Virus record (IMG/VR): IMGVR_UViG_3300042502_001233
Coordinates: 248,001-312,000 of that record
Strand: one strand, 5' to 3'
DNA: 64,000 bases
Position 1 is the stretch's first letter. Every line of letters begins with the position of its first letter. This document shows positions 32,469 through 57,666 of the stretch, in pieces. The translations under genes were made by a program, and so were the position numbers. Under the pieces are notes generated by a model. It was not told the DNA's origin and searched no databases. It saw nothing but the letters and a program-made list of their open reading frames with translations.

Positions 32469-33275
32469 TTAAATCGGTAAATTAATTTTACTTAAAATTT
32501 GATTTGATACGTGTGTATATATTTCAGTGGTTTTTACGTTAGCATGACCTAAACATTTTTGTATAATTCTTAAATCAGTACCAGCTTCCAACAGAGCGGT
32601 GGCTTGTGAATGTCTTAACAAATGAAAATGATATTCTTCACCAATATATTTTTTAACTATTTCATTACAACTTCTATGAGAATATTGTAAATTGTTACCT
32701 TGACCATTAAACAAATATTCTTTAGGTTTATACACTTTAAAATATTCACGCAAAAGATTTAAAACAATTGGTGACAAGGGAACGAATCTATCTTTTCTTC
32801 CTTTACTGTTTTTAATGTGTATTAACATTCGTTTACTATCAATATCTTCAATTTTTAAATTACACAATTCAGAAACTCGCATTCCTGTTGAATACGCTAA
32901 TGTAAGTATAGCTTTGTGTTTAATGTTTTCGATTTTAGATAATTTTTCGAGCAGAAACTCCTTTTCGATTATTTTTGGTAATTTTTTCTCTTTTCGTGGT
33001 CTTTTAAACGAAACCTTATCGTATTTTCTTTCTAATCCGTATTTATATAAAAACCTTATTGCGTTTATAACTTGATTTTGTTGTGAAACAGACGTGAATT
33101 TGTAATTATCTAAGTAATTCTGAAAATCTTTAGAATTTAAGTGAGCGACTTGTTTGTCCCCTACATTTTTAATGAAAGAGATAATGTGATACATATAATT
33201 TTCTTTTGTTCGTGGCGAGTAGTTAAGATATATAAACTTTTGTTCACAAATCTTTATAATTTTTTCGTTTAACAT
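32469..33275 (-). CDS. Integron-integrase-like tyrosine recombinase (short form, no IntI insertion)
   Basis: SQQNQVINAIRFLY, RPRKEKKLP, GMRVSE, KGRKDR, HLLRHS, LGH, TTEIYTHV; likely start MLNEK at 33275. Confidence 0.9.
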   Translation of the reverse strand: MLNEKIIKICEQKFIYLNYSPRTKENYMYHIISFIKNVGDKQVAHLNSKDFQNYLDNYKFTSVSQQNQVINAIRFLYKYGLERKYDKVSFKRPRKEKKLPKIIEKEFLLEKLSKIENIKHKAILTLAYSTGMRVSELCNLKIEDIDSKRMLIHIKNSKGRKDRFVPLSPIVLNLLREYFKVYKPKEYLFNGQGNNLQYSHRSCNEIVKKYIGEEYHFHLLRHSQATALLEAGTDLRIIQKCLGHANVKTTEIYTHVSNQILSKINLPI

Positions 33276-33294
33276 ACTGATTTTATTAATGGTT

Positions 33295-33325
33295 TGAGAT
33301 GTTTTTACATATATTATAGTTAGCA
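33295..33325 (+). other. Candidate attI-like site (crossover G|TT at 33319)
   Basis: First cassette starts GTTAGCACC just upstream of the integrase, with no attC hairpin to its left. Confidence 0.65.
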
Positions 33326-33331
33326 CCAATA

Positions 33332-33808
33332 CTACGATAGTGCTTCGATTTCAAGTATCATATCTTTATTTTTTACAGAAAAAACAAATTCACCTACATA
33401 TCCTGCGTCTTCTCCGTAAATAGCATCGCAACTATTCAATTCAGTTAGAAATTTGCTTGATAAGTCTTCTCCTAAAACATTTGAAAATAAATCAAGTTCT
33501 TCTTTGTAATTTGATGTAATTGCTATATCACCGATTACGAATAATCCTTGTTGTCTATTAAATCTATTTCCGTTTTTACCAGTTTTTTCACTATAAATTT
33601 TATTCCATTTATCTAATTTTAGAATATTATAATTTGTTGTATCTATGGTTATTTTATAACAATTATCACCGAATTTTTTAGCGTAATCTAAGTTAACCGC
33701 TAAATAATCAGCACCACTTCGGTTTTTATCATAAACACCATCAACACATTTATACACTGTGGTTTTACCAAAGTTTTTAACTTTATCTATTAATTCTCTT
33801 ATTTCCAT
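33332..33808 (-). CDS. Cassette 1 gene; possible ART-like fold
   Basis: VYK...YLAVNLDYAKKFG; the fold call is weak. Confidence 0.6.
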   Translation of the reverse strand: MEIRELIDKVKNFGKTTVYKCVDGVYDKNRSGADYLAVNLDYAKKFGDNCYKITIDTTNYNILKLDKWNKIYSEKTGKNGNRFNRQQGLFVIGDIAITSNYKEELDLFSNVLGEDLSSKFLTELNSCDAIYGEDAGYVGEFVFSVKNKDMILEIEALS

Positions 33809-33862
33809 ATTTTTACTTATAAATATTCCAAATTTAAAATTCTACCAAATAAACCGTAATGG

Positions 33863-33957
33863 TGCTAACAAGGTGTATAAGAAAGTTTGCTATCAAGTTC
33901 AGTGGTAAATTTGAAAGTTCCTATAAGCAAACCTTCTCATACACCCAATCGTTATAT
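33863..33957 (+). repeat. attC-like site 1 (family A)
   Basis: TAAC 33866, arms GGTGTATAAGAAAGTTTGCT / AGCAAACCTTCTCATACACC, GTT 33951. Confidence 0.9.
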
Positions 33958-33972
33958 TCAATATCAAAAATT

Positions 33973-34329
33973 TTATGGTTTTATAGAAATTGAATTAAAC
34001 CACTTGAGTTCAGATGTTAATTCATTCAACTTACCTTCGTATTTAACTATTTTATTTTCGTTCAATGGTTCGGATATTTTATAACCACCATCAATCTTTA
34101 TATGTTTAGTTTCTTTTTGATTTAGTTTGGAATGAATATTACCAATCCTCTCATTTATTGATTTAACATTCATATCAATAACCCATCTAACATCATCTAT
34201 ATTATGTTTAGATAATTCTTCAACAACTCCATTCCATTTAGTAATGAGTTTTGTTTCTAAATCAAAAACTAAACCACGTTGTCCGCCAAGACAACCATCT
34301 TCTTCAAACCATTCAATTTCTTTTTTCAT
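33973..34329 (-). CDS. Cassette 2 gene
   Basis: ORF fills the cassette. Confidence 0.75.
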   Translation of the reverse strand: MKKEIEWFEEDGCLGGQRGLVFDLETKLITKWNGVVEELSKHNIDDVRWVIDMNVKSINERIGNIHSKLNQKETKHIKIDGGYKISEPLNENKIVKYEGKLNELTSELKWFNSISIKP

Positions 34330-34352
34330 ATGTATAAATTTTTTGATACTAA

Positions 34353-34406
34353 ATATAACAAATGATAAACAACATTAAAACGATTGTTTATCATCAGACG
34401 TTAGTA
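34353..34406 (+). repeat. attC-like site 2 (short family B)
   Basis: TAAC 34356, ATGATAAACAA / TTGTTTATCAT, GTT 34400. Confidence 0.85.
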
Positions 34407-34435
34407 GCAAATTGTAAAACTTGCCACCGCACCAA

Positions 34436-34714
34436 TTACATATATTGTTCCTTTTTGAAATTTATGAATGATAGTTTTTCGTCAACACATTTCTCACAAA
34501 TTTGTGCAGTCCATTTCTGCGTATCTTTTCCGCTATGGTAGCCCCAATGTGTTTCTAACTTCATAAATTCAAAACTGTAATATGGCTCACCGTTATCAAC
34601 TCTAACATTATTATCTATTTCACCTTCATCAACCTTACAACTTTTGCCACAGCAATCACAAATCACATCTGTAATAACTTCGGTCTTTTTGTTTTGTGTT
34701 TCCTTTGTTTCCAT
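34436..34714 (-). CDS. Cassette 3 gene, Zn-finger (CDCC...CEKC)
   Basis: ORF track. Confidence 0.75.
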   Translation of the reverse strand: METKETQNKKTEVITDVICDCCGKSCKVDEGEIDNNVRVDNGEPYYSFEFMKLETHWGYHSGKDTQKWTAQICEKCVDEKLSFINFKKEQYM

Positions 34715-34765
34715 TTATATTTTAGTTTATCGTTTTCCTACGCTCAAAAAAGTTTTACAATCAGC

Positions 34766-34820
34766 TACTAACAGCGTATAAAAAACATTAAAACGATTTT
34801 TTATACGCAAACCGTTATAA
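34766..34820 (+). repeat. attC-like site 3 (family B)
   Basis: TAAC 34769, GCGTATAAAAAA / TTTTTTATACGC, same acattaaaacga loop as site 2, GTT 34814. Confidence 0.85.
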
Positions 34821-34826
34821 CCAATA

Positions 34827-36731
34827 CTACTTTTCGTCTCCGTAAATTGGCATATATCTTTCATCGTAACCAACGATTTTTCTATGTTTATTATCATCAA
34901 TGTATTTATCATCAGCATTTTTTTGTTGGTCAAACTCTTCTTTAAGTTTGATTAACCCATCTCTTAGTTCTTTTGGCAAAAGAGATTCATCAGCTAAAAT
35001 TTCTTGTCTGATTTGTTCGTGTTTTTGGTGAATATTATTCCCATGTTCAATTATTTTTTCTATTTTATTCTCCATATTTTTAATTTTTAAAACATTCAAT
35101 TAGTTTAATACTTGGTAAATTCCAAACATCAATTATTTTATAATCTGAACCATCAGTATTTGTTAGTATGATATTATTCGGTTCAATTTTGAAATCTGTT
35201 CTTATACAAATACCAAGGTTTTTATCGTTTTCTCTAATAAGAAAAAATGGTTCAAAACTTTTACTAACATCAGCTTTGTATCTTTTATAATTATAAACAT
35301 CATGTTCACCTATAATATGAAAATCTTTAAAATTATCAAATATAACACAAATCTGTCCAGATGCTATAACAACATCTAAATCAAATTCTTTCATATAATA
35401 CCTAACGAAACTATTTAAACTTTCGTTATGTTCAAGTTGTGTAATATCATTATTTGGTTTTTTATAATCCCAAACATAATCTTTTACTTTATCAACATTT
35501 TTTTCATATTCCTTAAATGTTTTATATTCAAGTCTTTTTAATATTTCTTCCATATTTTAATATTTTAACAATAAATCATTCAATTCTATATCTAAACCAA
35601 ATAATGATTTTTCAATCACTTCACGTATTGTTAATGTTGGTTCATCTTTCATAATATTTAAACAAATTAACATTAGCTCATTTGTTCTATCTGTTTGGTT
35701 GGTGAATTTAATCACATAATCAATATATTTTAAATCATCAAAATGTTCCATATTTTTAATTTTCATATATTTTAAAAATTTCTTCAATTTTAACTATTTT
35801 ATTACCAAATAAAACTTTATCACCAATAAACTCGTATTTAGAAATAAGATAATTTTCAAACCAATGTAAAAAAATAACAATATCTTGGTATGAATATTCA
35901 CTTTCAATATCCATAAATATTTTATGGTCTAAAAACATCCCAATAGGGTAGTAAACCCAATCATCTGGATTTCTACTATCTACTTCATCCACTAATTCCC
36001 TACAAAAAGATAAATCATTAAAATGATGATTATATACGTGAGGCTCATACCCACCAATTTTATTTTTATATGGTAAATTTAAACTCTTAATAAAATAAGG
36101 TTTTTTTTCATAATTGACATTAGATTCATATAATGAATTACGAAGTTTTAGTTTAAGTTTTTCTAACTTTTTATCGTAGTTGGTATTTGTCTTCGCAACA
36201 AATCCTTTATTTTTAAATTCTTCAACTTCTTCATCTGAACAATCTTCAACCCATTTAATATCAATATCAATAAGTTCTGTTTCTACTGAAGTGTCATCGT
36301 TTATTTTAGTTTCTCCACGATAGGCAAATGGTATTAAACCATTTTCTGGTATTTTAAAATTTTTTTCCATATTTTATAAATTTATTTTATTGATTAATTG
36401 GATATATGAGTTAATAGGTAATTTTTCAGATAAATATTTTTTTATTATTTCTGAATTATTGTATTTTTTTGGGTTATCCAAAAACTCAAAAAGAATTTCT
36501 TTAAATAAATCTTTTTCAATATCACTTTCACTACAATAACTCATAAAATCACCAAATGATGGTATGAAAGTATTAATATCAGTCATTATTATTTATATGT
36601 TTTAGTATTTCTTTAATAACATCTACCCATTGATTGGTTTCAGTTATATGTTTAATTTTGTTTTCTGAAAAAGAAGATACTTGTCTAAGACCTTCTTTAT
36701 CTGTAATAATAATCTCCATTTTATTTTCCAT
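34827..36731 (-). CDS. Cassette 4: operon of six ORFs (34827, 35080, 35557, 35756, 36374 and a short ORF near 36586-36731)
   Basis: ORF track; own TATATTTG promoter box near 36746. Confidence 0.7.
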
Positions 36732-36800
36732 AATTTATTTTTTTTACAAATATACTAATTATTATTCAATTAATCAAGTTTTATCTTAAAATCACCGTAC

Positions 36801-36824
36801 TGGTTATAACAAATGTTATAACCA
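36801..36824 (+). repeat. Collapsed attC-like site 4
   Basis: tggttaTAAC-aaat-GTTataacca; no hairpin body. Confidence 0.7.
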
Positions 36825-36827
36825 ATA

Positions 36828-37849
36828 CTACTTTTCGTCTTCGTAAATCGGCATAAAGTTTTCAGAATAACCAACTATTTTCCTATGTTTATTCTCTTCG
36901 ATATATTTATCATTAGCTATTTTTTGTTGGTCAAATTTTTCTTTAAGTTTTATTAACTCATCCTTTAGTTCTTTTGGTAAAAGAGACTCATCAGCTAAAA
37001 TTTCTTGTCTGATTTGTTCATGTTTTTGGTGAATACTATTTCCATATTCAATTATTTTTTTTATGTTATTCATGATTAAACGTATATTTTATATTTATTT
37101 TCTTTATAAGTTATTAATAATAATTCTCTAGGTATAACAGATAATGTATCTAACCAATTATGTCTTTCAGTTTCTGTTTTCTCCAAATATATATCTTCTC
37201 TAATGGTGTTTAAGCAGTCCGTTCTTATTATTGTGTTGAAATTGTCTGATAAAACCAATCTATTTTCTAATTCTAAATTAGTTTTAATAACGTTTAAACC
37301 AATACTTTGATATTGGTTCGTGGTTTTTGTGATTTCATTTATAAAATCACACATTTTTAAGTGCTTTAAAGATGGTTCATTTTTAGTAACTAAACTAAAA
37401 AATTCAAAATCAGTATCTTTATTCAACCAATCATACTTTTTAATCGAAATTATTAGTTTTAATTTATCACGATATTCATCAACTTCAGTTTTTGAAAGTT
37501 CTCCGACCATAACCCACGTTAAATCTTCAATAAATGTTTCATTACCATCAATGGGTGTTAACTTAGCTTTCGGAACGCCAATCATTGTTTCTTGTTCATA
37601 TTTATTACCACATTCTATTAACGATTTATTTGGATAACTTGTTTTTGTATCAGTTTTATAAATAAAATTAACTTTCCTTGGAATAAAATATTCTTCCAAT
37701 TCTTTAAATATTTCTGGATACCTTTCTTTTAAATATGAGTCACATTTTACGTAGTCAATACCATATCTAAAAGTCGTTTTATGTAATGCTAAAGAATAAC
37801 TTTTAATCACATCAATCAAATTATTTATATTATATATGCTTTTTTTCAT
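36828..37849 (-). CDS. Cassette 5: two ORFs (36828, paralog of 34827; 37076)
   Basis: ORF track; ends nearly identical to cassette 4. Confidence 0.75.
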
Positions 37850-37921
37850 AATTTATTTTTTTTACAAATATACTAATAATTATTCAATTAGTCAAGTTTT
37901 ATCTTAAATTCACCGTACTGG

Positions 37922-38015
37922 TTATAACAAGGTGTATAAGAAAGTTTGCTATTAAGTTTAGTTGTAATTTGAAAGTTCATCTAAGCAAACCTTCTCATAC
38001 ACCCAATCGTTATGT
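37922..38015 (+). repeat. attC-like site 5 (family A)
   Basis: TAAC 37925, GTT 38009. Confidence 0.9.
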
Positions 38016-38091
38016 GTAAGTGTGAGTTCCCTCTCCGAATTAACTTTTGTGTTAGAAAATTTTAGAAAAAAGAACCCACCGCACATATTTT

Positions 38092-39033
38092 TTATTTTTT
38101 TTCAGTTATTAAATTATTATCTAAAGCATAAAATAATTGTATAAAGTATCTTTTATCTTTTAATTTCACATCTCCAGTATAACTATCATATGTTCTACCG
38201 TTTGTCATTCTTATTTTCGATAATGGTTGAGTTCTTAATAATTGAATGTCTTTTTCATTCATATTAAAGTATGATTCACCATCACAGTTAAATTTTTTCC
38301 AAGATTTTTTAGTAATCTTTTCACCATTTTCAAAAAGAATAATAATCTCATCATTTTCATTACATCCACCAATACCTACCATTGTAGTAGTAATCATTGA
38401 AAATGATAGTTTATCAGAGTTTATGTGTGTTGATATTCTGAATCCAATTTTTCCAACATCGTTAGCACAGATAAAATCTCTACTTCCATATACATATGTT
38501 TCCCCACTCATAACATCAGTTTCCTTTACTACATAAACACTGTCTTTTGATGTTTGTCCAAAAGATACTATTGTCATTAAACACATCATTAGTGTCATCA
38601 TCATTACTTTTAAATTTTTCATTTTTATTTATTTTAAGTTAATTATTTTTTAATTTCTACAATCAATCATTACAGTTCCACCACCACAAATATACACATC
38701 ATTAACGTGAGTGTTATTTTTATAATGTTCTTTTAAATCACTTTTTAATGTCTCATATTCATTACCATTTACAACTTTTTCAATTCTAACATTAATTAAT
38801 CTACCAGTTGGCATTACTTTATATGAACCATCCTTTGTGTATTTTGTATATTCCTGACCACCTAACATCCCATAACTTTGGTATGTGGTTTGTAAAGATT
38901 CAACAAACTCATCAGTTATTTGATACAACTCTGTGTTTGGTTCTATAATGTTTTTCACTTTATCACCAACACCATTACAAGACATCATAAAAACAGCCAA
39001 TAATCCCATTAAAATTAATTTTACTTTTTTCAT
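38092..39033 (-). CDS. Cassette 6: secreted protein (38092) and lipoprotein (38650)
   Basis: Signal peptide ...VSFGQ; lipobox FMMSC; TACCTTTG box near 39096. Confidence 0.75.
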
Positions 39034-39202
39034 TTTATTTGTTTTTTTAATTTACCTACTCTAAATCAGTTTTCGGTTTCCCTGTTTTTGTTTTACAAAG
39101 GTAAGTATAATTTCTTAAATAAAAAAATATTTCCCCTTCTTTTTTTCTAAAATTTTCTTTTAGTGCTTCAATTGAAGTTCATCGCTTAATAATCACACCT
39201 AC

Positions 39203-39297
39203 ACATAACAAGGTGTATAAGAAAGTTTGCTGTAAAGTTTGGTGGTAAAATTGAAAGTTCGTCTAAGCAAACCTTCTCATACACCCAACCGTTAGCA
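39203..39297 (+). repeat. attC-like site 6 (family A)
   Basis: TAAC 39206, GTT 39291. Confidence 0.9.
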
Positions 39298-39303
39298 CCA
39301 ATA

Positions 39304-39732
39304 CTACGTCCATTGCGGAGAATCAGGCATTTCATATCCAAGTTCTTGTAATTTCAGGTATCCGAAAAAGTGATTTTTATTATATCCTGATATTTCGTCA
39401 TCTGAACTATATTCAGTAAACCAAACAGATTTATGGTGAAACTGCATTCTACACTTTGATATAGTAGTAAAATAACCATCACTTACGGTATCTTGGCTAA
39501 GTAGCTCTACATCAATTGAACAATCCCCATACTTTCTAAATGATTCATAAAAATCAAGCCCAAGTATTCCGTTTCTTGAAATTATAGTGTTAACTGTCAA
39601 AGGGTGTATTCTGTTAATAACTGAAATTACATCTTCGTCAGTAATATCAATTAGTCGTTTCAAAACCGTACTGGTGCTAACAGCACCTATACCCAATTGG
39701 GCAGTTTCGTTGTTTTTTGAAGTTTCTTCCAT
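39304..39732 (-). CDS. Cassette 7 gene (start inside attC7)
   Basis: N-terminal TAQLGIGAVS encoded by the attC arm. Confidence 0.75.
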   Translation of the reverse strand: MEETSKNNETAQLGIGAVSTSTVLKRLIDITDEDVISVINRIHPLTVNTIISRNGILGLDFYESFRKYGDCSIDVELLSQDTVSDGYFTTISKCRMQFHHKSVWFTEYSSDDEISGYNKNHFFGYLKLQELGYEMPDSPQWT

Positions 39733-39807
39733 TTTATTAAGTTTTATCTGTTATTGAAAATTTGTGCTATTTATTGCCCAACTGGGCATAGCTACAATCC
39801 GTTAGCA
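39675..39807 (+). repeat. attC-like site 7 (family C)
   Basis: TAAC 39678, CTATACCCAATTGGGCA / TGCCCAACTGGGCATAG, GTT 39801. Confidence 0.88.
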
Positions 39808-40095
39808 GTAATCAGGATGAACTGCTAAATAATGTAAGTAAATAGAATGAATTTTTGGCTTACCAATACAAGTTAATAAACTAACTTGTTCTGCATTAAT
39901 AAATTCTGCTATTGGAATTTTACCTGAAATATCAATTCGTAATATTTTAATTGGCTCTTTAGATTTATCAAAAGTGTTGTAAAAAATATTTTTTTTAATT
40001 AAATCTATTTCTTTTAAAAATAAATCCGAAAAGACTACTGCTAACACATTATTGTCGCAATTGGCGGTTTTGGTACTCTCTGAATGTTTTGTCAT
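39802..40095 (-). CDS. Cassette 8 gene (start inside attC8, stop at the crossover TTA)
   Basis: ORF track. Confidence 0.7.
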   Translation of the reverse strand: MTKHSESTKTANCDNNVLAVVFSDLFLKEIDLIKKNIFYNTFDKSKEPIKILRIDISGKIPIAEFINAEQVSLLTCIGKPKIHSIYLHYLAVHPDYC

Positions 40096-40172
40096 TACTT
40101 TTATTTTTAGTGATTAATCAATAGTTTGTTTTGTGTTTGTCGCCACCTGACGACAATAATCCAACGTTAAAT
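40039..40172 (+). repeat. attC-like site 8
   Basis: TAAC 40042, ATTATTGTCG / CGACAATAAT, GTT 40166. Confidence 0.85.
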
Positions 40173-40499
40173 GCAAGTTATCCCAAAATCACGTTTAAGA
40201 ATTTTGATACAATTTTCCTTATTAAGTGATGAAATATAAATGCAATTTTCTTTTTTAATAACTTTTTTATTTTTCTTTTTAAAATTACCATTAACAGCAT
40301 CGTTCCAATGAATCTCTTTTATTTCAAGCTCGAAAACGGCTAATTCAATAGTTCTTTTATTTAAATCAAACTCAAACAAAATGTGATTTTCGTGTGGTAT
40401 AATTCTTGAATCAAAAACTTTTTGAATTTCTGCTTGTTGCTGTTTAGTGATTTCAATTTTATCTTTTACTTTGTCTTTTTCAAAATCGGATAATCTCAT
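40167..40499 (-). CDS. Cassette 9 gene
   Basis: Stop at the crossover TTA. Confidence 0.75.
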   Translation of the reverse strand: MRLSDFEKDKVKDKIEITKQQQAEIQKVFDSRIIPHENHILFEFDLNKRTIELAVFELEIKEIHWNDAVNGNFKKKNKKVIKKENCIYISSLNKENCIKILKRDFGITCI

Positions 40500-40510
40500 A
40501 TTTAACCTGC

Positions 40511-40643
40511 ATTTAACAGCCGTTTGGCAAGATTAGTGCTTTAGGGCTTAATTTATAATTGTCTTGTATTTGTTATTTAAGTGATAAAATGATAGTTTTA
40601 CGCTTATTTATCACTAACCTCGCCAAGCGTGAAAACGTTAGCA
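40511..40643 (+). repeat. attC-like site 9
   Basis: TAAC 40514, TTGGCAAGATTAGTG / CACTAACCTCGCCAA, GTT 40637. Confidence 0.85.
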
Positions 40644-40982
40644 GTCATTGCTACCATACGTTTCCAAATCGAAAATTTCGCCAACTTCATTTCTATATTG
40701 AAATTTAAAATTGTCTGTTAAATTTCGTGTCAATGATGCACTTGAAAATACTTTTTTATTTTGAACACAACTTGCAATATCTTCAATCTTTGCTCTACCA
40801 AAATCGTAGCTATCACCGTGCAAAGTAAATATTGAATTATCTCTATCAAGTGTCCACCATCCACCGCCTTTAACCTTTGAAATATCGGTTGCAAGTTGTT
40901 TATGATAAGTACATTTTGCCACTATTAAGCAGTCGCCTTCTTGGTCATCTGTTTCGATTATAAATTTTGGGAATACATCCAT
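40638..40982 (-). CDS. Cassette 10 gene
   Basis: Likely start MDVFPK; GGGWW...G.S.DFG motif. Confidence 0.75.
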   Translation of the reverse strand: MDVFPKFIIETDDQEGDCLIVAKCTYHKQLATDISKVKGGGWWTLDRDNSIFTLHGDSYDFGRAKIEDIASCVQNKKVFSSASLTRNLTDNFKFQYRNEVGEIFDLETYGSNDC

Positions 40983-41021
40983 TTTTAAATTGAGTTTTGT
41001 TGTTAATAATCCGCAACGAAC

Positions 41022-41152
41022 TGCTAACATAGTGTTGCCAAAATGGGGGCAGACGTGCATTTAATGAACATTTGTACTGTATTCAGCAGTAGTGCTTTTA
41101 ATGGGCTTTTGTACTATAAATCCCCTACTTCGGCAACACTCAGCCGTTAGCA
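41022..41152 (+). repeat. attC-like site 10
   Basis: TAAC 41025, AGTGTTGCC / GGCAACACT, GTT 41146. Confidence 0.85.
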
Positions 41153-41162
41153 GTAATTATTG

Positions 41163-41387
41163 CTAACCGTTGTACATAGAAAAAGCCACTACATCGAAGT
41201 CGCCTAAAAAATCTTCTTTCTTTCTTGTCACGATAACTTGAACTTGTATTTCTTCATTTTCATTTATAACTAAACTTCCACAAGAGGTTGAAAAAGCATA
41301 GTTTTCTTGGTTTTCTGCTAATTTTTCAGCACATTCTTTGATTGCTCCTTTCAAATAAAGCGAATCGATTAATTTTTCTAAAGCCAT
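41163..41387 (-). CDS. Cassette 11 gene
   Basis: Likely start MALEK. Confidence 0.7.
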   Translation of the reverse strand: MALEKLIDSLYLKGAIKECAEKLAENQENYAFSTSCGSLVINENEEIQVQVIVTRKKEDFLGDFDVVAFSMYNG

Positions 41388-41408
41388 AATATTTGGTATT
41401 ATAACTAC

Positions 41409-41539
41409 TGCTAACATTCGCTATACAATAGTTGGGTTAATTTTTAAATTTAAAGTTCAGTTTGTACTTTTTTAATCAGTCTTTAATCGAAGTTTGGGTC
41501 TGTACCTTTCCCAACCATCGTATAGCTTTTCCGTTATAA
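41409..41539 (+). repeat. attC-like site 11
   Basis: TAAC 41412, GCTATACAATAGTTGGG / CCCAACCATCGTATAGC, GTT 41533. Confidence 0.85.
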
Positions 41540-41544
41540 GCCAT

Positions 41545-41793
41545 TTAAAGCGGAAACCTACTACGACAATATTCTCCATCATTTTTTTCGTAAAAACTTC
41601 TTGCATCTTCACGAGTTCCTACAAAAACACATCTATCCTCTTGCATAATATAAACACATTCTCTATTCCATAAAGCAAGTGGTATTTTAAACCATTTCGC
41701 ACCATCTTCAATATCATCGTGTACATGAAGAGAAAAACGGCTTATAACAGCGGTTTTGTCGCATTGTGGCACTTGGTCTTTTTCTGTATTCAT
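41545..41793 (-). CDS. Cassette 12 gene (start inside attC12)
   Basis: MNTEKDQVPQCDKTAVISR. Confidence 0.7.
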   Translation of the reverse strand: MNTEKDQVPQCDKTAVISRFSLHVHDDIEDGAKWFKIPLALWNRECVYIMQEDRCVFVGTREDARSFYEKNDGEYCRSRFPL

Positions 41794-41877
41794 AGTTTTT
41801 AATTTAATTATTGTTTTATTTTTGTTAAGTTTGGTCTTTAATCGCCACAACGACGACAAAGCCACAGGACGTTAGTA
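41742..41877 (+). repeat. attC-like site 12
   Basis: TAAC 41745, GTT 41871. Confidence 0.85.
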
Positions 41878-41882
41878 GCCAT

Positions 41883-42086
41883 TTAAGAAAGTGCTTTTTT
41901 CAACGCTTTCAATATTCTTTGGCACTCTTTCTTTTCTTCACCAACATTATTCCAAACAAGAAACTCATAAGTACTTATCATTCCTTCTGCTGTATCTCGT
42001 CTTATTTTAACATTAACAAAACGGCTACTAACAGCACCTATACCCAATTGGGTAGTTTCTTGGTTATTCAAATTTTCGTGTTCCAT
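41883..42086 (-). CDS. Cassette 13 gene (start inside attC13)
   Basis: MEHENLNNQETTQLGIGAVSSR. Confidence 0.7.
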   Translation of the reverse strand: MEHENLNNQETTQLGIGAVSSRFVNVKIRRDTAEGMISTYEFLVWNNVGEEKKECQRILKALKKALS

Positions 42087-42158
42087 ATTTACTTTATTTT
42101 AAGTTGATAATTTTGTGTTTCAAATCGCCCAACTGGGCATAGCTGCAAAACGTTAGCC
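42026..42158 (+). repeat. attC-like site 13 (family C)
   Basis: TAAC 42029, arms nearly identical to attC7, GTT 42152. Confidence 0.88.
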
Positions 42159-42164
42159 GTAATT

Positions 42165-42431
42165 CTAATCACGCCAAGTGATGTGCATTGCTTCTAACTT
42201 ATCCCCAAGTATCGGACTGCCATAGTTTTCAAACTTCATTTTAATTGAAGGATAAACTTCCAATCCATTTGGACATTGTGTTTTTAATGGTAGCTTTCGT
42301 TTATCTTCTGAAATTCGTAATGCTTCTAAAATGAAGTCATTCAAACTTTTATCTTCGGAAGAAGAACTACGGCTAACAACGTATTGCTGAACATTGCCAG
42401 CTTCATCGGTAATTTGAACTTTGTATTCCAT
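42165..42431 (-). CDS. Cassette 14 gene (start inside attC14)
   Basis: MEYKVQITDEAGNVQQYVVSRS. Confidence 0.7.
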   Translation of the reverse strand: MEYKVQITDEAGNVQQYVVSRSSSSEDKSLNDFILEALRISEDKRKLPLKTQCPNGLEVYPSIKMKFENYGSPILGDKLEAMHITWRD

Positions 42432-42504
42432 ATCAACCTTTTATTTTAAATTAAACATTTGTGCTTCTAAATTGGCAACGTCAGCAATACGCAAAACGTT
42501 ATAC
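42371..42504 (+). repeat. attC-like site 14
   Basis: TAAC 42374, CGTATTGCTGA / TCAGCAATACG, GTT 42498. Confidence 0.85.
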
Positions 42505-42520
42505 ACAATATTTTTACCAA

Positions 42521-43020
42521 TCACACCGCATAAATCCATAATTGAGTTATTTGTTCGTCAGTAATATTTTCTGGTGTTATATCATATTCACCATATTTTT
42601 TCATATATGTTATATATTCTAATTTCATATCTTTGGATAACGAGTTCCAAAAATTTAATGATTTTTGTCTGTCTTCCATTTCTTCATCATTCATAACTCT
42701 AATTATTTTATGTTCTAATAATTGTGGTGCAATAATACCTTGATTATATAACCAACTCGCTAACTTAAATTGTAGTCTTACTAATAGTGTTTTCATTTCT
42801 TATTTATTATTTATTAAAATTACTCGAAAATAGGTAAAAAAGTTTCGTTATCATAACCAATAATCTTTTTACCGTTTTTTATATTATCGTTTATCCATTT
42901 ATCTTCTTCAGACCACTTTGTTTCAAATTCTGTTTTTAAATTATTCATTCGGTCTTTTAAATCTTGTGGGATATTATCATTATTTAATATCTCATTTCTT
43001 AATTGTTCGTGTTTTTCCAT
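42521..43020 (-). CDS. Cassette 15: two ORFs (42521; 42820, paralog of 34827/36828)
   Basis: ORF track; TATATTTG box near 43035. Confidence 0.7.
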
Positions 43021-43085
43021 AATTCTATTTTTTACAAATATACTAATTTATTTCTAATTTATCAACCCTCCCACAAAAATACTGT

Positions 43086-43179
43086 GTATAACAAGGTGTA
43101 TAAGAAAGTTTGCTATCAGCATTTGTGGTAATTTTAAAGTTCATCTAAGCAAACCTTCTTATACACCCAACCGTTATAG
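43086..43179 (+). repeat. attC-like site 15 (family A)
   Basis: TAAC 43089, GTT 43173. Confidence 0.9.
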
Positions 43180-43208
43180 GAAATTTTATTTTTTTTCTCA
43201 CCGCACCG

Positions 43209-43511
43209 TTAGCATCTTGGAACACCTTCTGCTGGGTCATACCATCCGTGAATATTAAATTCGTGCTTTGGCGAAGGTTTTTTACCCCATTTAGCAACTG
43301 CTTCTTCTTCTGTTTTTGGAAACGGAAATTGATTATGAATAACATTTAGTTCTTGTTGGTGCTTTTCATCACCCATACTTGGGTCAATTTCGTGTTTAAA
43401 AACTAAATTAAGATGCTTCTTAATCATTGTCGTTTGTTCTTTGGTTATTGTTTCAGCGTTGCTTACTTCAAAAAAACCTTGTAGCCAATAGGCAAAATCT
43501 CTACTTGTCAT
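43209..43511 (-). CDS. Cassette 16 gene (MTSRDFAYWLQGFFE, a phage-type motif)
   Basis: F.YWLQG..E...IK.HL.LVF motif. Confidence 0.75.
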   Translation of the reverse strand: MTSRDFAYWLQGFFEVSNAETITKEQTTMIKKHLNLVFKHEIDPSMGDEKHQQELNVIHNQFPFPKTEEEAVAKWGKKPSPKHEFNIHGWYDPAEGVPRC

Positions 43512-43557
43512 ATTTTTAAATTTGTTTATTGCCAACCCACAAAAAAATAAAACTATC

Positions 43558-43653
43558 CTATAACACGGGTTTGACGTAATGCCACCAGATAGTTTAGGCT
43601 AAATTTAAAGTTCGTGCAAGGTGGCACTAACGCCAAGCCCGAAACCGTTATGA
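43558..43653 (+). repeat. attC-like site 16 (last)
   Basis: TAAC 43561, CGGGTTTGACGTAATGCCAC / GTGGCACTAACGCCAAGCCCG, GTT 43647. Confidence 0.85.
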
Positions 43654-44118
43654 AAACCATTCTGGTAATTCTCTACCTTTCCATTTGGCTAATTTCCTTT
43701 TCTCTGTTCTATAATATTCTCTGTAGCTATCCACAGCATCACCAACCTTGCATTCGTCTGGCATAGCCAAAGCAAATGGTGTTATATCACTATTGTATTT
43801 CAATTTAGGTTTATGTATTAAACACCATTCAATTACCGCTTGTGACTTATGTCTTTTTTCGTAACGATATGTGTATTCTTTGCACAATTCAAGTCCCAAA
43901 TCACAAAGCCAAATGTAGTTTTCCATACATTCTCTGGCCCATATTGCACTTGGATGATTTTTATGGGATAACTTGTATGGTATATCATACCCAGATTCTA
44001 CTACGTGATGAACGCCACACAACAATTGTGCATATTCAACTATCATCTTGGTACAATGGCGATTTACATGGTATTTTGCACATTTTTTAACATCTAAATC
44101 TAAAACGAATATGTTCAT
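43648..44118 (-). CDS. Pyrimidine-dimer DNA glycosylase / endonuclease V family protein
   Basis: MNIF.LD...CA.YH...H..KM.VE.AQLL...H.NHP...W...EY..RY...H. Confidence 0.8.
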   Translation of the reverse strand: MNIFVLDLDVKKCAKYHVNRHCTKMIVEYAQLLCGVHHVVESGYDIPYKLSHKNHPSAIWARECMENYIWLCDLGLELCKEYTYRYEKRHKSQAVIEWCLIHKPKLKYNSDITPFALAMPDECKVGDAVDSYREYYRTEKRKLAKWKGRELPEWFS

Positions 44119-44168: not shown

Positions 44169-45137
44169 TTAATATCTATATTTTTTAAAAATATTTTCAG
44201 AATTTTTTGTTAATTTCACAATACCAGATGAAATTAATTCAATTATTTTTTGTTTTGTAACATATGGTGATTCTATTTCAGTTATAATTGAATAATTTTC
44301 ACCAAAAATTTCTTTACCTTTTTGTATTTTTATCGGGTTTACACCGTATTCTAACAGACTAGTTGGTTTTATTTCATAAATGAAATCACCATCAGTGAAA
44401 TCTGGGAAATATGTTTTTATTTTATCTTTATAAAAATATTTAACAGCGTATTTTTTTATTTCACAACTAGTAAATATTTTATCACTATTATTAATTAAAA
44501 AAGATAATTCTAGTGAACTTCTAAAATAAAGATTGTTATACCAACCACTAACATGTTTAACATTATTTGATGTTGTTATGTATTTTTCTCTATCTAAATT
44601 TTCAGTATAGAACTTATTTAGAGATTCACTAATTTTATTTTTAGTCTCGTTATTATGTTTTAAAGTGTTATTTTTCCTTTTTGATTCAATAATATTTTTT
44701 TGCCACTCATTCGTTCTTTCAAGTTTAGAACCAGTTAATTTGTCAATAACTTTATTTTTTATTTCATCTACTTTCATTGGGTTATTAACACCATATTTTT
44801 GTAAATTAGAAATTTCCCAATTTTTTTGTTTAATTTTTTGGTTAGTGTTAGAAACCCTTTTATCAACCATATCTTTAGATTGAGTTTTACCTAACCAATA
44901 ATCTCTTTTAATTGTTTTGTTTTTGTTCCTACATTCAATAGAACAATTTTTTAAATAACCAACACCTACATTTCTGTATGTAGTTTCTTTACCACAAACA
45001 CAACATTCACCGTCACCTTTAATTTTTAAATATTTGTCATAGTATTCTCTACCATTTAGATTGTGTTTAAAATTAACATGTGTTGTTAAAGCTTTTAAGT
45101 TTTTGAATTCTTCATTACAAATTTTACAAGTTTCCAT
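44169..45137 (-). CDS. Homing endonuclease (C2H2 finger, NUMOD3-like repeats, TnsA-like PD-(D/E)XK)
   Basis: FRSSLE...YFPDF...YEIKP. Confidence 0.7.
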   Translation of the reverse strand: METCKICNEEFKNLKALTTHVNFKHNLNGREYYDKYLKIKGDGECCVCGKETTYRNVGVGYLKNCSIECRNKNKTIKRDYWLGKTQSKDMVDKRVSNTNQKIKQKNWEISNLQKYGVNNPMKVDEIKNKVIDKLTGSKLERTNEWQKNIIESKRKNNTLKHNNETKNKISESLNKFYTENLDREKYITTSNNVKHVSGWYNNLYFRSSLELSFLINNSDKIFTSCEIKKYAVKYFYKDKIKTYFPDFTDGDFIYEIKPTSLLEYGVNPIKIQKGKEIFGENYSIITEIESPYVTKQKIIELISSGIVKLTKNSENIFKKYRY

Positions 45138-45311: not shown

Positions 45312-46472
45312 TTATTTTTCAGGGGTTTCTTCATTAACAACAGCCCAATATACACAACCAATCGATATAATCAATGTCATAATGTAAACAAACCATAATT
45401 GTCCAGAGGTTGGTTCAAATGACAAATAGTTGAAATCTTTGAACGATTTATAATGCCAATGTGAGTTTATAGCCTTCATATATATATTATAAAATGCTTT
45501 ATCATCTTTGACTGGTGCTTCCATTAAATCTTCTCTGATATCTATCAAAACACGTTTATTATCGCACCATGAAAATGGTTTAACCCATTCAATGTTACCC
45601 AAGTTGTCAAGCCCGATGCAAACAACTATTTCATTCTGATTACCACCATCCCAATAAGCTTCTTGTTGGAATGCTGTGCTGATATCTCTGTTCTTAAAGA
45701 ACAAAGTAAAAATTTTAACCTTATATTTACGACCATATGCTCCGTTGATATAATCTAACGTTTTAATAATTTTAAGTCTTGACCTAGAGTTAAAATCTTC
45801 TATACCTATGACACTAGATTGGTAATTATATTGTTGTAATTCAGGATACTCATACAATCCACTAGTCCTTGCTTTATCTTTTTCAATATTTGGATAGTTA
45901 AAGGCCGAATGGTTACTTTTAAGAATATTTGTGAACGATTTGGTATGTGTTGTGGTTATCGATGTATTGATGTCACGATTCCAGATAATACGGTACATAT
46001 CACCATCCTTACCACAAGAACCACGATAATTTATATCACGATTTAACTCAACAAATTTAGGCGTTTCTTTCCAAAGTTTGACCAAAGATAAATATTTGTC
46101 TCGACTTATTGATATTTCATCACCATCTGAGTCAATCATAACATAACGTTCTGAGTTATAGTCACAATAGGAACAGTCATAATAAACCGTGTGTGTTGTT
46201 CTATTTTTTCCAGAACCAGTACTATATGTGCGGCTACATGTTTTCTTTTTCCATGTTTCCCATGCTTCATAGTATCTAGCTTCTGTTACAATATAACCGT
46301 TGTATTCAACGTCTGAAAGGGTTACTGATTTCATAGTGTAATATGAAATCAATATAAACAATGCGCTACCAGCAACTGGGATAAGAATTTCCCACCAAAC
46401 AATTTTGTTTTTAAATAAAACCCACCCTATCACAGCGGCTAGGATGGGGATTATAAGTGCATACCAAATCAT
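45312..46472 (-). CDS. Membrane protein
   Basis: Two N-terminal and one C-terminal hydrophobic helices. Confidence 0.75.
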   Translation of the reverse strand: MIWYALIIPILAAVIGWVLFKNKIVWWEILIPVAGSALFILISYYTMKSVTLSDVEYNGYIVTEARYYEAWETWKKKTCSRTYSTGSGKNRTTHTVYYDCSYCDYNSERYVMIDSDGDEISISRDKYLSLVKLWKETPKFVELNRDINYRGSCGKDGDMYRIIWNRDINTSITTTHTKSFTNILKSNHSAFNYPNIEKDKARTSGLYEYPELQQYNYQSSVIGIEDFNSRSRLKIIKTLDYINGAYGRKYKVKIFTLFFKNRDISTAFQQEAYWDGGNQNEIVVCIGLDNLGNIEWVKPFSWCDNKRVLIDIREDLMEAPVKDDKAFYNIYMKAINSHWHYKSFKDFNYLSFEPTSGQLWFVYIMTLIISIGCVYWAVVNEETPEK

Positions 46473-47605
46473 TAGAGGTCAAGTTTTATAATGTTAAACA
46501 ATTCATTTTCGTTATTATACACTTTATGAGGGTAATCATTAGGTACATAACTATTATCATAACTAAAATATAGTAGTTTTATTTTTTTCATTTCACATTT
46601 TTTTCGTTTATTTTCATCTCTTTTTACAATTTTCTCAAATTCTTTTTCGCCACCAAAAAATTTAATTGGTTTAAAATGTTGACCACCTTGATATTCAATA
46701 GCTATTTTTAATTTAGGAATGAATATATCAAAATGTTGTTTACCAAGCCACTTTGGTGAAAATTTATTTAAAACTTCTAAAGTTTTAAATTCTTTTTTTA
46801 AGTTTTCAAAAAGTTTATTTTCAGAAACAGTACCAAATAAATTACATTTTGGGCAACCACAGCCTTTTAAATGCGTGTTAGGTATTTGTTCAAAATCACC
46901 ATGAATACTACATGTTATTGTTAATTTAGTTTTTGAACCTTTATATATACTTTTACTGTAATCATACCTATCACCATGTATTAATAAAGCGATTTTTTTA
47001 AACTCTTCTGTGTTAGTAGAAACTCTACCGACACATTTAGGACAACCACTACCGTCTAAATGTATAAAAGGGATTTGATTAAAATCACCGTGAATAGGGC
47101 AGTTAATTATGACTGAACTTTTATTGTTTATATAATTAACTTTATCATAATTGTAAAAAAAGTTATGTTTTTTACTAGCTTTTTCTATAAACCTATTATT
47201 TATAATTTTAGTTTCCCTTATTTTTCCAATTTTACATATTGGACACCCTTGACCTTTTAAGTGCATAGCTGGTGTTTGTTCAAACATACCATGGTTATCA
47301 CATATTATTTTAACTTTTGTTTTTGTGTTTACATAATCAACCATCGAATAATCATATTTATCCCCATGTGCTTCATTAAAAGATTTCAAAACGCTATCAA
47401 TATCTTTTTTTTCTTTACCAGCACATTTAGGACAACCACGACCACTTAAATGACTATGAGGCAATTGATAAAATTCACCGTGTATACTACAAATTATAGG
47501 TATTTTAGTTTTTGAGTCGTAATCACTTATGTTTTCATAATTATATTTATCACCATGAACCAATTTACTCTTTTCGATGAACTTTTCTTTTGTTAATTTT
47601 TCCAT
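46472..47605 (-). CDS. Endonuclease with four CxxHG repeats and Vsr/PD-(D/E)XK C-terminus
   Basis: FDIFIPKLKIAIEYQGGQHF. Confidence 0.75.
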   Translation of the reverse strand: MEKLTKEKFIEKSKLVHGDKYNYENISDYDSKTKIPIICSIHGEFYQLPHSHLSGRGCPKCAGKEKKDIDSVLKSFNEAHGDKYDYSMVDYVNTKTKVKIICDNHGMFEQTPAMHLKGQGCPICKIGKIRETKIINNRFIEKASKKHNFFYNYDKVNYINNKSSVIINCPIHGDFNQIPFIHLDGSGCPKCVGRVSTNTEEFKKIALLIHGDRYDYSKSIYKGSKTKLTITCSIHGDFEQIPNTHLKGCGCPKCNLFGTVSENKLFENLKKEFKTLEVLNKFSPKWLGKQHFDIFIPKLKIAIEYQGGQHFKPIKFFGGEKEFEKIVKRDENKRKKCEMKKIKLLYFSYDNSYVPNDYPHKVYNNENELFNIIKLDL

Positions 47606-56703: not shown

Positions 56704-56802
56704 TGCGAGAGGATGGATTCGAACCACCGACACCTAGTCCCTAGTTGTTCCCTTGTACTTCGGGCTAAAAACCTTAGCGTTTACCAACTTCGCCACTCTC
56801 GC
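56704..56802 (-). tRNA. Non-canonical tRNA-like RNA (Leu-like frame, irregular anticodon arm)
   Basis: Acceptor GCGAGAG/CTCTCGC-A, D arm GCG..GGTAAA.CGC, T arm GGTGG-TTCGAAT-CCATC. Confidence 0.65.
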
Positions 56803-57592: not shown

Positions 57593-57666
57593 TGGAAGTA
57601 ACGGGACTCGAACCCGTGTTCTCGCAACATCAGCCGCTTTATACTATCCTATTGTACTATACTCCC
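57593..57666 (-). tRNA. tRNA-like RNA with G3:U70 and A73, irregular anticodon loop (CTGATG)
   Basis: GGGAGTA/TACTTCC-A, D arm GTAC/GTAT, T arm ACGGG-TTCGAGT-CCCGT. Confidence 0.7.

Follow-up and report, generated by a model that had tools for sequence, protein, structure and literature searches.

Integrons, such as class 1 integrons and the Vibrio chromosomal integrons, combine an IntI tyrosine recombinase with a primary attI site and an array of gene cassettes carrying attC sites. Integron parts have also been reported in phages. Bacterial integrons captured by temperate phages or prophages, as well as small clusters of attC sites without integrase (CALINs) in virulent phages, were described previously (Qi et al. 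2023, PMC9892861), and it was shown that the bacterial IntI1 can recombine attC sites carried by virulent phages. Other systems that are relevant here are the Xer recombinases, including archaeal XerA, and the PeSL mobile regulatory cassettes of T4-type phages (PMC2839356, PMC4122927). Here we analyzed a 64,000-nucleotide stretch (the window; positions 248,001 to 312,000 of IMG/VR virus record IMGVR_UViG_3300042502_001233) of a 362-kb phage, which carries 16 small gene cassettes, built and bounded like integron cassettes, next to a Xer-like recombinase gene. An earlier note, made from the sequence alone, interpreted this region as an integron-like system with a short IntI-like recombinase. Our results support the integron-like reading, but with qualifications regarding the recombinase, the orientation of the cassette genes, and the suggestion that integrons are known mainly from bacterial chromosomes and plasmids. 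A lineage-resident array with its own non-IntI recombinase was not found in the literature that we searched.

All the elements described in the earlier note are present, and their positions are given in the table below. The alternative reading of the recombinase ORF, with 286 codons and starting with TTG at 33329, runs through the core. The lone core GTTAGCACCA at 33319-33328 has no hairpin on its recombinase side. Each of the 16 units starts with GTTA and 6 further nucleotides and ends with the reverse complement of its own first 8 to 10 nucleotides (8 nucleotides once, 9 nucleotides three times, and 10 nucleotides twelve times). In the six variable bases, the start of a unit matches its own end at 5.75 of 6 positions, whereas the end matches the start of the next unit, across the hairpin, at only 2.56 of 6 positions, and none of 100,000 permutations reached the observed sum (P<1e-5). 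The sites between the boxes measure 40, 41, 80-83, and 117-122 nucleotides, with one site collapsed to 4 nucleotides. This corrects the range of roughly 55-135 bp given previously to 40-122 nucleotides between boxes, or 60-142 nucleotides when the boxes are included, and the terminal core was placed at 43647-43650. All sites fold, and the circularized versions give a 10-bp R stem. A simple stem scanner found 9 hits in the 64-kb window, all inside the array, against about 0.1 per shuffle. The region has a low G+C content of 23-34% and the data come from metagenome assemblies, but a chance pattern or an assembly artifact in AT-rich repetitive DNA is refuted by the recurrence of the pattern in more than 100 independent contigs from different samples and in isolate genomes. 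Moreover, the sites differ in sequence, so repeat collapse is not expected.

Table. Positions of the recombinase gene, the attI-like site, the cassettes, and the distal boundary in the window (ORFs of the cassettes are on the minus strand).
Coordinates	Strand	Feature	Body	Site	ORFs and remarks
32469-33275	-	Tyrosine recombinase, 268 aa			ATG at 33275; Xer/IntI-group enzyme lacking the IntI-specific insertion
33276-33322	+	attI-like site			43-nt leader of the recombinase gene ending in ATATATTATA followed by GTTA; crossover core GTTA at 33319-33322
33319-33950	+	Cassette 1	33319-33869	33870-33950 (81 nt, type A)	33332-33808, 158 aa, without Pfam match; 10-nt own-end complementarity
33951-34399	+	Cassette 2	33951-34359	34360-34399 (40 nt)	33973-34329
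34400-34813	+	Cassette 3	34400-34772	34773-34813 (41 nt)	34436-34714
34814-36814	+	Cassette 4	34814-36810	36811-36814 (collapsed, 4 nt)	Six ORFs; its two ends are homologous to those of cassette 5
36815-38008	+	Cassette 5	36815-37928	37929-38008 (80 nt, type A)	36828-37073 and 37076-37849
38009-39290	+	Cassette 6	38009-39209	39210-39290 (81 nt, type A)	38092-38622 and 38650-39033, with signal-peptide or lipoprotein-like N-termini
39291-39800	+	Cassette 7	39291-39681	39682-39800 (119 nt)	39304-39732, starting 51 nt inside the site
39801-40165	+	Cassette 8	39801-40045	40046-40165 (120 nt)	39802-40095; stop codon is the TAA of the core
40166-40636	+	Cassette 9	40166-40517	40518-40636 (119 nt)	40167-40499
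40637-41145	+	Cassette 10	40637-41028	41029-41145 (117 nt)	40638-41060
41146-41532	+	Cassette 11	41146-41415	41416-41532 (117 nt)	41163-41417
41533-41870	+	Cassette 12	41533-41748	41749-41870 (122 nt)	From 41545, starting in the site
41871-42151	+	Cassette 13	41871-42032	42033-42151 (119 nt)	41883-42086
42152-42497	+	Cassette 14	42152-42377	42378-42497 (120 nt)	42165-42431
42498-43172	+	Cassette 15	42498-43092	43093-43172 (80 nt, type A)	42521-42796 and 42820-43020
43173-43646	+	Cassette 16	43173-43564	43565-43646 (82 nt)	43209-43535
43647-44118	-	Distal boundary			Terminal GTTA (43647-43650) fused to a conserved backbone gene (43648-44118, 156 aa, no Pfam match) whose stop codon is the TAA of the core

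The geometry of recombinase, attI-like site, and array is conserved across a large family of phage contigs. Of 68 distinct related loci, 47 have at least one cassette starting no more than 140 nucleotides upstream of the recombinase ATG, whereas none of 57 downstream controls does. In 93 cassettes from relatives, the complementarity peaks sharply at 10 nucleotides (9 nucleotides in 27, 10 nucleotides in 62, and 11 nucleotides in 4), although a few cassettes have imperfect or mismatched boxes, such as cassette 2 of the related locus L205. The attI motif ATATAT(A)ATA-GTTA is 89-100% conserved in 46 loci, and the sequence diverges right after the core. In a set that was anchored only on a 21-nucleotide hairpin arm, 87 of 88 arms follow TAAC, GTTA follows about 80 nucleotides later in 81 of 88, the own-complement box is present in 60 of 79, and the recombinase gene lies on the same side and strand in 19 of 19.

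Natural variants break at the core. L205, whose recombinase is 90% identical, shares both flanks with the window at 88% and 94.5% nucleotide identity, up to 33322 and from 43645, with nothing shared to the left of the latter position, but the 10.3-kb array is replaced by an unrelated 2.3-kb array of 5 cassettes. Of two other related loci, L015 equals L018 plus a 717-nucleotide body and an 80-nucleotide hairpin inserted exactly at the attI-like core. Similarly, loci L058 and L059 diverge right after hairpin-GTTAT, and loci L011 and L024 share body, distal hairpin, and GTTAT at 99.4% identity in unrelated contexts. A copy of cassette 10 with about 90% nucleotide identity lies in locus L095, whose recombinase is only 54% identical, and this homology begins exactly at GTTA. 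Isolates of the cultured Polaribacter phage Freya differ only by nested blocks that all start at the GTT located 46-49 nucleotides upstream of their recombinase gene: relative to Freya_10, Freya_9 lacks 307 nucleotides, Freya_5 lacks 3198 nucleotides, and Freya_1 lacks 4942 nucleotides, whereas Freya_6 equals Freya_5 plus 472 nucleotides, with 3-7 kb of identical sequence beyond. The recombinase of Freya is, however, only 38.6% identical to that of the window. Gain, loss, and replacement of cassettes with junctions at the GTT core thus occur in relatives, as expected for an integron-like system. One could also imagine that each unit is an invertible switch, with the 10-bp inverted boxes at its two ends acting as double-strand recombination sites whose unit-specific spacer restricts recombination to the unit's own ends. 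Inverted repeats with unit-specific sequence do flank every unit, and a TA-rich motif at similar spacing from the core occurs both in attI and, as reverse complement, next to the TAAC box. We consider this very unlikely, as 121 of 128 cassettes have their gene in the same orientation, the observed variants are insertions, deletions, and replacements between directly oriented cores with different spacers, and inversion does not explain the hairpins.

A set of 85 sites had a median fold z of -3.9, against -0.3 for body segments, and these sites fall into 44 arm-sequence families. The minus strand is the more stable in 65 sites against 17, and in 15 of 15 window sites. RNAalifold found no consensus on a MAFFT alignment of the 15 window sites, so the conservation of structure rests on the folds of the individual sites, and canonical extrahelical bases were not identified. 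The better-folding strand is also the mRNA sense strand, so the G-T asymmetry could reflect an RNA-level role. It is possible that the hairpins are regulatory stem-loops, acting as terminators, insulators, or promoter-carrying elements between small phage genes, as in the PeSL cassettes, with shuffling by general homologous recombination between similar hairpins and an unrelated recombinase. The hairpins do lie between genes, some loops carry start codons and enriched motifs, and identical hairpins can sit between different bodies, as L011 and locus L034 share a site at 98.7% identity. However, we regard this as improbable, as it explains neither the cassette-specific 10-nucleotide complementarity between a unit's own two ends, nor the junctions at GTT between partners that share no other homology, such as attI and hairpin sites, nor the fixed position and strand of the recombinase gene.

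The recombinase is not IntI-like in the defining sense. It matches Pfam PF00589 and PF13495 and has the catalytic R-K-H-R-H-Y residues, with R133, K158, H218, R221, H244, and Y253 being invariant in 14 homologs. The best NCBIfam model is XerA_Arch at 186 bits, below its cutoff of 220, and the integron-integrase model TIGR02249 gives 158 bits in two stretches, below its cutoff of 265. The protein aligns end to end with archaeal XerA (4a8e and 5hxy), whereas the IntI-specific insertion is lacking, as 34 residues face 82 in VchIntIA (IntI4, 2a3v). This is an argument against our interpretation, because the I2-helix insertion is reported to be needed by integron integrases for single-strand recombination (Escudero et al. 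2020, PMC7790495). Possibly, the sites are real integron-type sites that are recombined by another enzyme, such as a host IntI, a host XerC/D, or a second phage enzyme, while the adjacent recombinase serves lysogeny or dimer resolution. The activity of IntI1 on phage-borne attC sites would fit with this, and the flavophage literature reads these genes as lysogeny integrases (PMC8776804). Nevertheless, this seems unlikely, as the linkage of recombinase, attI-like core, and array is tight and oriented over enzymes 47-100% identical to that of the window, and in Freya at 38.6%, and the crossover point lies in the leader of the recombinase gene. More distant homologs at 33-38% identity have no arrays, and a 362-kb phage is an unlikely lysogen.

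Taken together, we are fairly confident that this is a phage-resident gene-cassette platform that works like an integron but uses a different recombinase lineage. The recombinase would recombine the attI-like site in the leader of its own gene with attC-like hairpin sites. A mobile cassette consists of TTA and 6 nucleotides, a body usually carrying one small gene on the opposite strand, the reverse complement of that start ending in TAAC, a hairpin site of 40-122 nucleotides, and a final G. When the cassette is excised as a circle, its two ends would meet and form a 10-bp R stem, an asymmetric internal loop, a long L stem, and a variable loop. Insertion would occur between the G and the TT of attI, and excision between attI or attC cores in direct orientation. 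In the absence of experimental evidence for circles or for catalysis by this enzyme, it is inferred that the adjacent recombinase is the catalyst, that the substrate is a folded single strand (the minus, mRNA-sense strand, which corresponds to the integron bottom strand), and that circles are the intermediates. The array stores accessory phage genes and turns over much faster than the backbone. In the long sites, the start codon and the first 10-18 codons lie inside the cassette's own hairpin site, so that gene and site move together.

Compared with integrons, the locus has the same arrangement of a tyrosine recombinase gene abutting a primary site, followed by an array of mostly single-gene, promoter-poor cassettes, each with an imperfect-palindrome site of about 60-140 bp including boxes. 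In both, only AAC and GTT are conserved, the crossover lies at the GTT core, the start of each cassette is complementary to the inner box of its own site, one strand folds better than the other, the cassettes are mostly ORFans, and turnover is fast next to a conserved platform. It is not a canonical integron, as the recombinase is nearer to XerA, the R box is 10 bp with a GTTA core, and there is an asymmetric internal loop instead of recognized extrahelical bases. The cassette genes are inverted, as they read toward the recombinase gene and many start inside their own site, and the carriers are phage genomes, ranging from siphoviruses of about 44 kb to contigs above 300 kb. The integrons and attC clusters reported by Qi et al. 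also represent integron-type sites in phage DNA, including that of a Polaribacter phage, and already introduced the idea that phages carry cassettes. However, their complete integrons have canonical IntI and look captured from bacteria, whereas here the platform has its own non-IntI recombinase and is conserved across a phage lineage. The closest sequence and structure relatives of the recombinase are the XerA proteins, and a Xer enzyme can apparently use a folded single strand as substrate with single strand exchange, as for XerCD and the attP hairpin of the CTX phage. In our case there is no dif-like 28-bp site, and the enzyme is phage encoded and tied to an array of many different hairpin sites rather than to one chromosomal site. 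Finally, the PeSL cassettes also lie in hyperplastic regions of large phages made of small ORFan genes separated by stem-loops, with gene-by-gene insertion, deletion, and replacement between close relatives. PeSLs seem to have no dedicated recombinase and probably recombine through sequence homology of the motif, whereas here the junctions lie at a 3-4-nucleotide core between otherwise unrelated partners, and the units carry own-end complementarity.

The window is part of the IMG/VR contig IMGVR_UViG_3300042502_001233, which is 362,018 nt long. Nearly all its genes are on the minus strand, and its content is phage-like, with homing and HNH endonucleases, a sigma factor and a nuclease. Each of the 16 units of the array starts with GTTA plus six variable bases, ends with the reverse complement of its own start, closing in TAAC, and is followed by a site of 40, 41, 80-83 or 117-122 nt that folds into a hairpin, except that one site is collapsed to 4 nt. 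In the six variable bases, the start of a unit matches its own end at 5.75 of 6 positions, whereas the end matches the start of the next unit, just across the hairpin, at only 2.56 of 6 positions. None of 100,000 permutations reached the observed sum (P<1e-5). This own-end rule is what separates integron-type cassettes from a row of palindromic spacers. A stem scanner that ignores the rule found 9 sites in the 64 kb, all of them inside the array, against about 0.1 in shuffled sequences. The observation is confirmed. Megablast of the array against GenBank phages found no match, and Rfam found nothing in the array. Outside the array, Rfam indicates two tRNA genes, of which ARAGORN reports only the second, with an odd two-base anticodon call. 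The length of the first suggests an insertion or a long variable arm.

Features of the array and of its surroundings (window coordinates unless stated otherwise)
Feature	Coordinates	Strand	Description
Tyrosine recombinase gene	32469-33275	minus	268 aa
attI segment compared with the sites	33309-33322		contains TATA-N5-GTTA
Core GTTAGCACCA	33319-33328	read on plus	43 nt upstream of the recombinase ATG; no hairpin on its recombinase side
Cassette array	33319-43646		16 units
Paralogous small ORFs	34827-35099, 36828-37073, 42820-43020	minus	66-90 aa; recombinase-proximal end of cassettes 4, 5 and 15
Collapsed site	36811-36814		4 nt
ORFs of cassette 6	38092-38622 and 38650-39033	minus	signal-peptide or lipoprotein-like N-termini
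Examples of similar long sites	39682-39800 and 42033-42151		arm of the site is translated
Terminal GTTA	43647		fused to a backbone gene
Homing or HNH endonuclease-like genes	44169-45137, 46472-47605, 59683-60543	minus	just beyond the array and further on
tRNA genes (Rfam)	56704-56802 and 57593-57666	minus	the first is 99 nt long
Cassette with extended terminal repeat	12864-13141 of L205		ends form an imperfect inverted repeat of about 28 nt

When the two ends of a unit are joined, as they would be in an excised circle, each site folds into a 10-bp R stem, an asymmetric internal loop with 1-2 nt next to TAAC and 3-5 nt next to GTTA, a long L stem and a variable loop. We collected 85 different sites of at least 30 nt from 68 loci. 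The base after TAAC is A in 97% of these, position +7 is T in 97%, and the base before GTTA is C in 91%. Based on per-site folds compared with shuffles, the median fold z-score is -3.9, against -0.3 for equally long pieces of cassette bodies. The arms fall into 44 sequence families, so structure is conserved and sequence is not. RNAalifold on a MAFFT alignment of the 15 window sites gave no consensus structure, as the arms are too diverged and the short sites misalign. The minus strand folds better in 65 sites against 17, and in 15 of 15 window sites, because of G-T pairs. In integron terms the plus strand is the top strand, with R'' at 5' and R' at 3' and the cassette lying 5' of its site. 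The better-folding strand is therefore the bottom strand, as in integrons. However, here it is also the mRNA sense strand, so an RNA-level cause cannot be excluded. The TA-rich element that lies 5-6 nt from the core in attI also appears, as reverse complement, next to the TAAC box of the sites, and Freya, a cultured Polaribacter phage, has TATA-GGGGT-GTT. This may be a recombinase-binding element.

Of the 16 cassettes, 12 carry one ORF, three carry two and one carries six, all on the minus strand. A Pfam search of 20 cassette proteins gave nothing above threshold. Neither ORF of cassette 6 has a Pfam match, and they are possible envelope or superinfection-exclusion proteins. The three paralogous small ORFs share ...HEQIRQEIL... 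and ...IVGY...PIY... motifs, and cassettes 4 and 5 also share both termini while their interiors differ. Stop codons lie 1-36 nt from the G of the core, and in cassettes 8-10 and in the backbone gene the stop is the TAA of the core itself. In six of the eight long sites the ORF starts 32-54 nt inside the site, and at +117 in cassette 12 if its GTG start is used, and it reads through one arm and through the TAAC box. The site to the right of a body therefore belongs functionally to that body. Different cassettes with similar long sites encode similar N-terminal peptides (...ET(A/T)QLGIGAVS...), because the arm of the site is translated. The Bacteroidetes -7 promoter motif TAnnTTTG lies near the start of only about 6 cassettes and is not enriched, whereas the loops are enriched for TTTGTG and GTTTTGT on the plus strand. 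Across relatives, 121 of 128 cassettes have their gene in the recombinase sense, which is the reverse of canonical integrons. Shufflons and invertible segments are found in both orientations, and this fixed gene orientation, together with the insertion and deletion variants described below, contradicts the possibility that each unit is inverted by unit-specific recombination.

The recombinase has many relatives. We fetched 34 IMG/VR loci, 80 metagenome loci and 80 loci from genome collections, and more than 120 protein clusters are at least 72% identical and mostly labelled XerD. With a strict parser, requiring at least 9 exact complementary bases and a chain anchored within 140 nt of the ATG, 47 of 68 distinct loci have at least one cassette directly upstream of the gene, while none of 57 downstream controls does. 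The complementarity is 9 nt in 27 cassettes, 10 nt in 62 and 11 nt in 4. Exact-match chain parsers of this type under-count, because one 8-nt link breaks a chain. The bases to the left of the first core are conserved as ATATAT(A)ATA-GTTA in 46 loci, and the sequence diverges right after the core. As an independent sample, we scanned IMG/VR for a 21-nt arm of the commonest hairpin. This gave 102 stretches, of which 80 were analysed (88 arm occurrences). In 87 of 88 cases the arm follows TAAC, in 81 of 88 there is GTTA about 80 nt on, and in 60 of 79 the own-complement box is present upstream. In all 19 cases where a recombinase homolog lies in the stretch, it has the same side and strand as in the window. 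Recurrence in independent assemblies and in isolates excludes an artefact. It is still possible that another enzyme catalyses the recombination, because IntI1 can use phage-borne attC sites (PMC9892861), but this is hard to square with the conserved, oriented linkage. Homologs at 33-38% identity have no arrays. On a Flavobacteriales MAG contig (JADFAL010000071.1), about 1.9-6.4 kb beyond the start codon on the 3' side of a recombinase 41% identical to that of the window, there is a chain of four cassettes with the same own-end rule and related hairpin arms. It lies on the other side of the recombinase gene and in inverted orientation, so it may be a second architecture of the system. In bacterial genome collections, close homologs occur in MAG contigs and in one isolate contig, of Tenacibaculum soleae A2R05 (NZ_JAUOSW010000010.1), which has a recombinase 50% identical to that of the window, an attI-like TATATCATAGTTAGCAAC and hairpin sites. 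Its neighbouring genes look phage-like, including a Clp-protease head gene. It is a possible prophage or co-cultured phage and another culturable handle on the system. No clear chromosomal, non-phage example was established.

The earlier note had proposed to test whether relatives differ by cassettes at G|TT, and they do. Locus L205, which has a recombinase 90% identical to that of the window, matches the window at 88% up to 33322, the last base of the attI GTTA, and again at 94.5% from 43645, two bases before the terminal GTTA. Between these points it has 5 unrelated cassettes in 2.3 kb instead of 16 in 10.3 kb. The backbone genes flanking the window array were found only in L205, so the comparison of array size on a common backbone rests on that single relative. 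The related loci L015 and L018 are identical through the attI side, after which L015 has an extra 717-nt body and 80-nt hairpin, and then the two are identical again. Two other loci, L058 and L059, are 99.8% identical through the first units and diverge right after a hairpin-GTTAT. Loci L011 and L024 share one body, its distal hairpin and GTTAT at 99.4% identity, while the hairpin on the other side is unrelated. The mobile unit is therefore the body plus the recombinase-distal site. Window cassette 10 has a copy at about 90% nt identity in L095, a locus whose recombinase is 54% identical, and the homology starts exactly at GTTA. As seen in L205, L011 and L024, cassettes can also share about 30 nt at each end, plus the short hairpin, while carrying different bodies. 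Regulatory stem-loops like the PeSL cassettes of T4-type phages (PMC2839356), if shuffled by homologous recombination, explain neither the own-end rule nor junctions between partners, such as attI and the hairpin sites, that share only the core.

An interesting finding was the variation among cultured isolates of Polaribacter phage Freya, whose recombinase is 38.6% identical to that of the window. All isolates share the 49 nt from the ATG to ...TATAGGGGTGTT and differ from there on. Based on exact block mapping between isolates, Freya_9 equals Freya_10 minus 307 nt, Freya_5 equals Freya_10 minus 3198 nt, Freya_1 equals Freya_10 minus 4942 nt, and Freya_6 equals Freya_5 plus a new 472-nt unit. 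Every far junction is a GTT. In Freya_10 two of these follow a full hairpin site and one follows a 13-nt remnant, and in Freya_6 the junction follows an arm remnant. The sequence beyond is identical for 3-7 kb. Nested changes that all share the attI endpoint are what attI x attC recombination predicts. The evidence for insertion at attI and excision at the core rests on natural variants only, and the position within GTT is not resolvable.

The recombinase matches PF00589 (E=2.9e-39) and has R133, K158, H218, R221, H244 and Y253, all invariant in 14 homologs. The earlier note had described it as having IntI-type motifs, but it is not an integron integrase in the defining sense. Against VchIntIA (2a3v) the match splits into two stretches, and profile positions 175-208 (34 residues) face chain residues 178-259 (82 residues). 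The insertion carrying the I2 helix is therefore absent, judged from this alignment. Archaeal XerA structures (4a8e, 5hxy) align end to end. All NCBIfam models, whether Xer or integron integrase, score below their cut-offs. Cury et al. (PMC4889954) define IntI by this region, and Escudero et al. (PMC7790495) attribute single-strand recombination to the I2 helix. This family therefore either works without that helix, on sites with an asymmetric loop rather than recognised extrahelical bases, or uses another substrate form.

The integron-type interpretation is supported, with these qualifications, although catalysis by the adjacent recombinase and circular intermediates are inferred. Three arguments favour single-strand exchange over classical double-strand exchange, although these are inferences: the partners share only GTT(A), which is too little for a 6-8-bp overlap, the stems covary while their sequences drift, and the two strands differ in stability. 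We consider it somewhat more likely than not that phages of Bacteroidota carry their own active, lineage-wide gene-capture system, which arrived at integron logic (attI, folded hairpin sites, cassette circles, exchange at G|TT) with a Xer-like recombinase that never had, or has lost, the I2-helix insertion thought necessary for single-strand recombination. If so, integron-type recombination arose more than once, or predates IntI, and much of the hypervariable accessory gene content of these phages is driven by a dedicated enzyme. It would be a platform resident in viruses rather than borrowed from bacteria, giving a mechanism for the fast turnover of small ORFan genes in large phages, the place where anti-defence and host-takeover genes are expected. 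The homing or HNH endonuclease-like genes beyond the array are a second kind of mobile element in the same region. The finding challenges the statement that recombinases without the IntI-specific region near attC sites are not cassette recombinases (PMC4889954) and the statement that the I2 helix was the innovation that enabled single-strand recombination (PMC7790495). It also affects annotation, as these genes are labelled XerD or integrase and taken as signs of a temperate lifestyle. The paper that described the flavobacterial phages Freya and Ingeline reads their integrases in this way and does not mention arrays. Under the above reading, many such integrases would in fact be cassette recombinases.

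In the literature searched, which did not cover all journals, we found no description of a resident array with a non-IntI recombinase in phages. The closest report is that of Qi et al. 2023 (PMC9892861), which describes three complete integrons in temperate phages or prophages, with canonical IntI and apparently captured from bacteria, and 17 attC clusters without integrase. Compared with the Xer recombinases, the enzyme scores below the curated family cut-offs, with 186.2 against 220 for XerA_Arch, 154.9 against 335 for XerC and 151.1 against 330 for XerD. Compared with integrons as defined for IntegronFinder (PMC4889954), the array has an adjacent tyrosine recombinase and sites that are imperfect inverted repeats in which TAAC and GTTA are invariant and whose lengths cluster near 40, 80 and 110-120 nt, and the start of a cassette pairs with the inner box of its own site and not with that of the neighbour. 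It differs in that the integron-integrase models TIGR02249 (158.6 against a cut-off of 265) and PRK15417 (106.8 against 435) are not reached, the additional region near patch III is missing, and the cassette genes do not read away from the recombinase gene, as they do in integrons, where they are expressed from a common promoter Pc at the platform.
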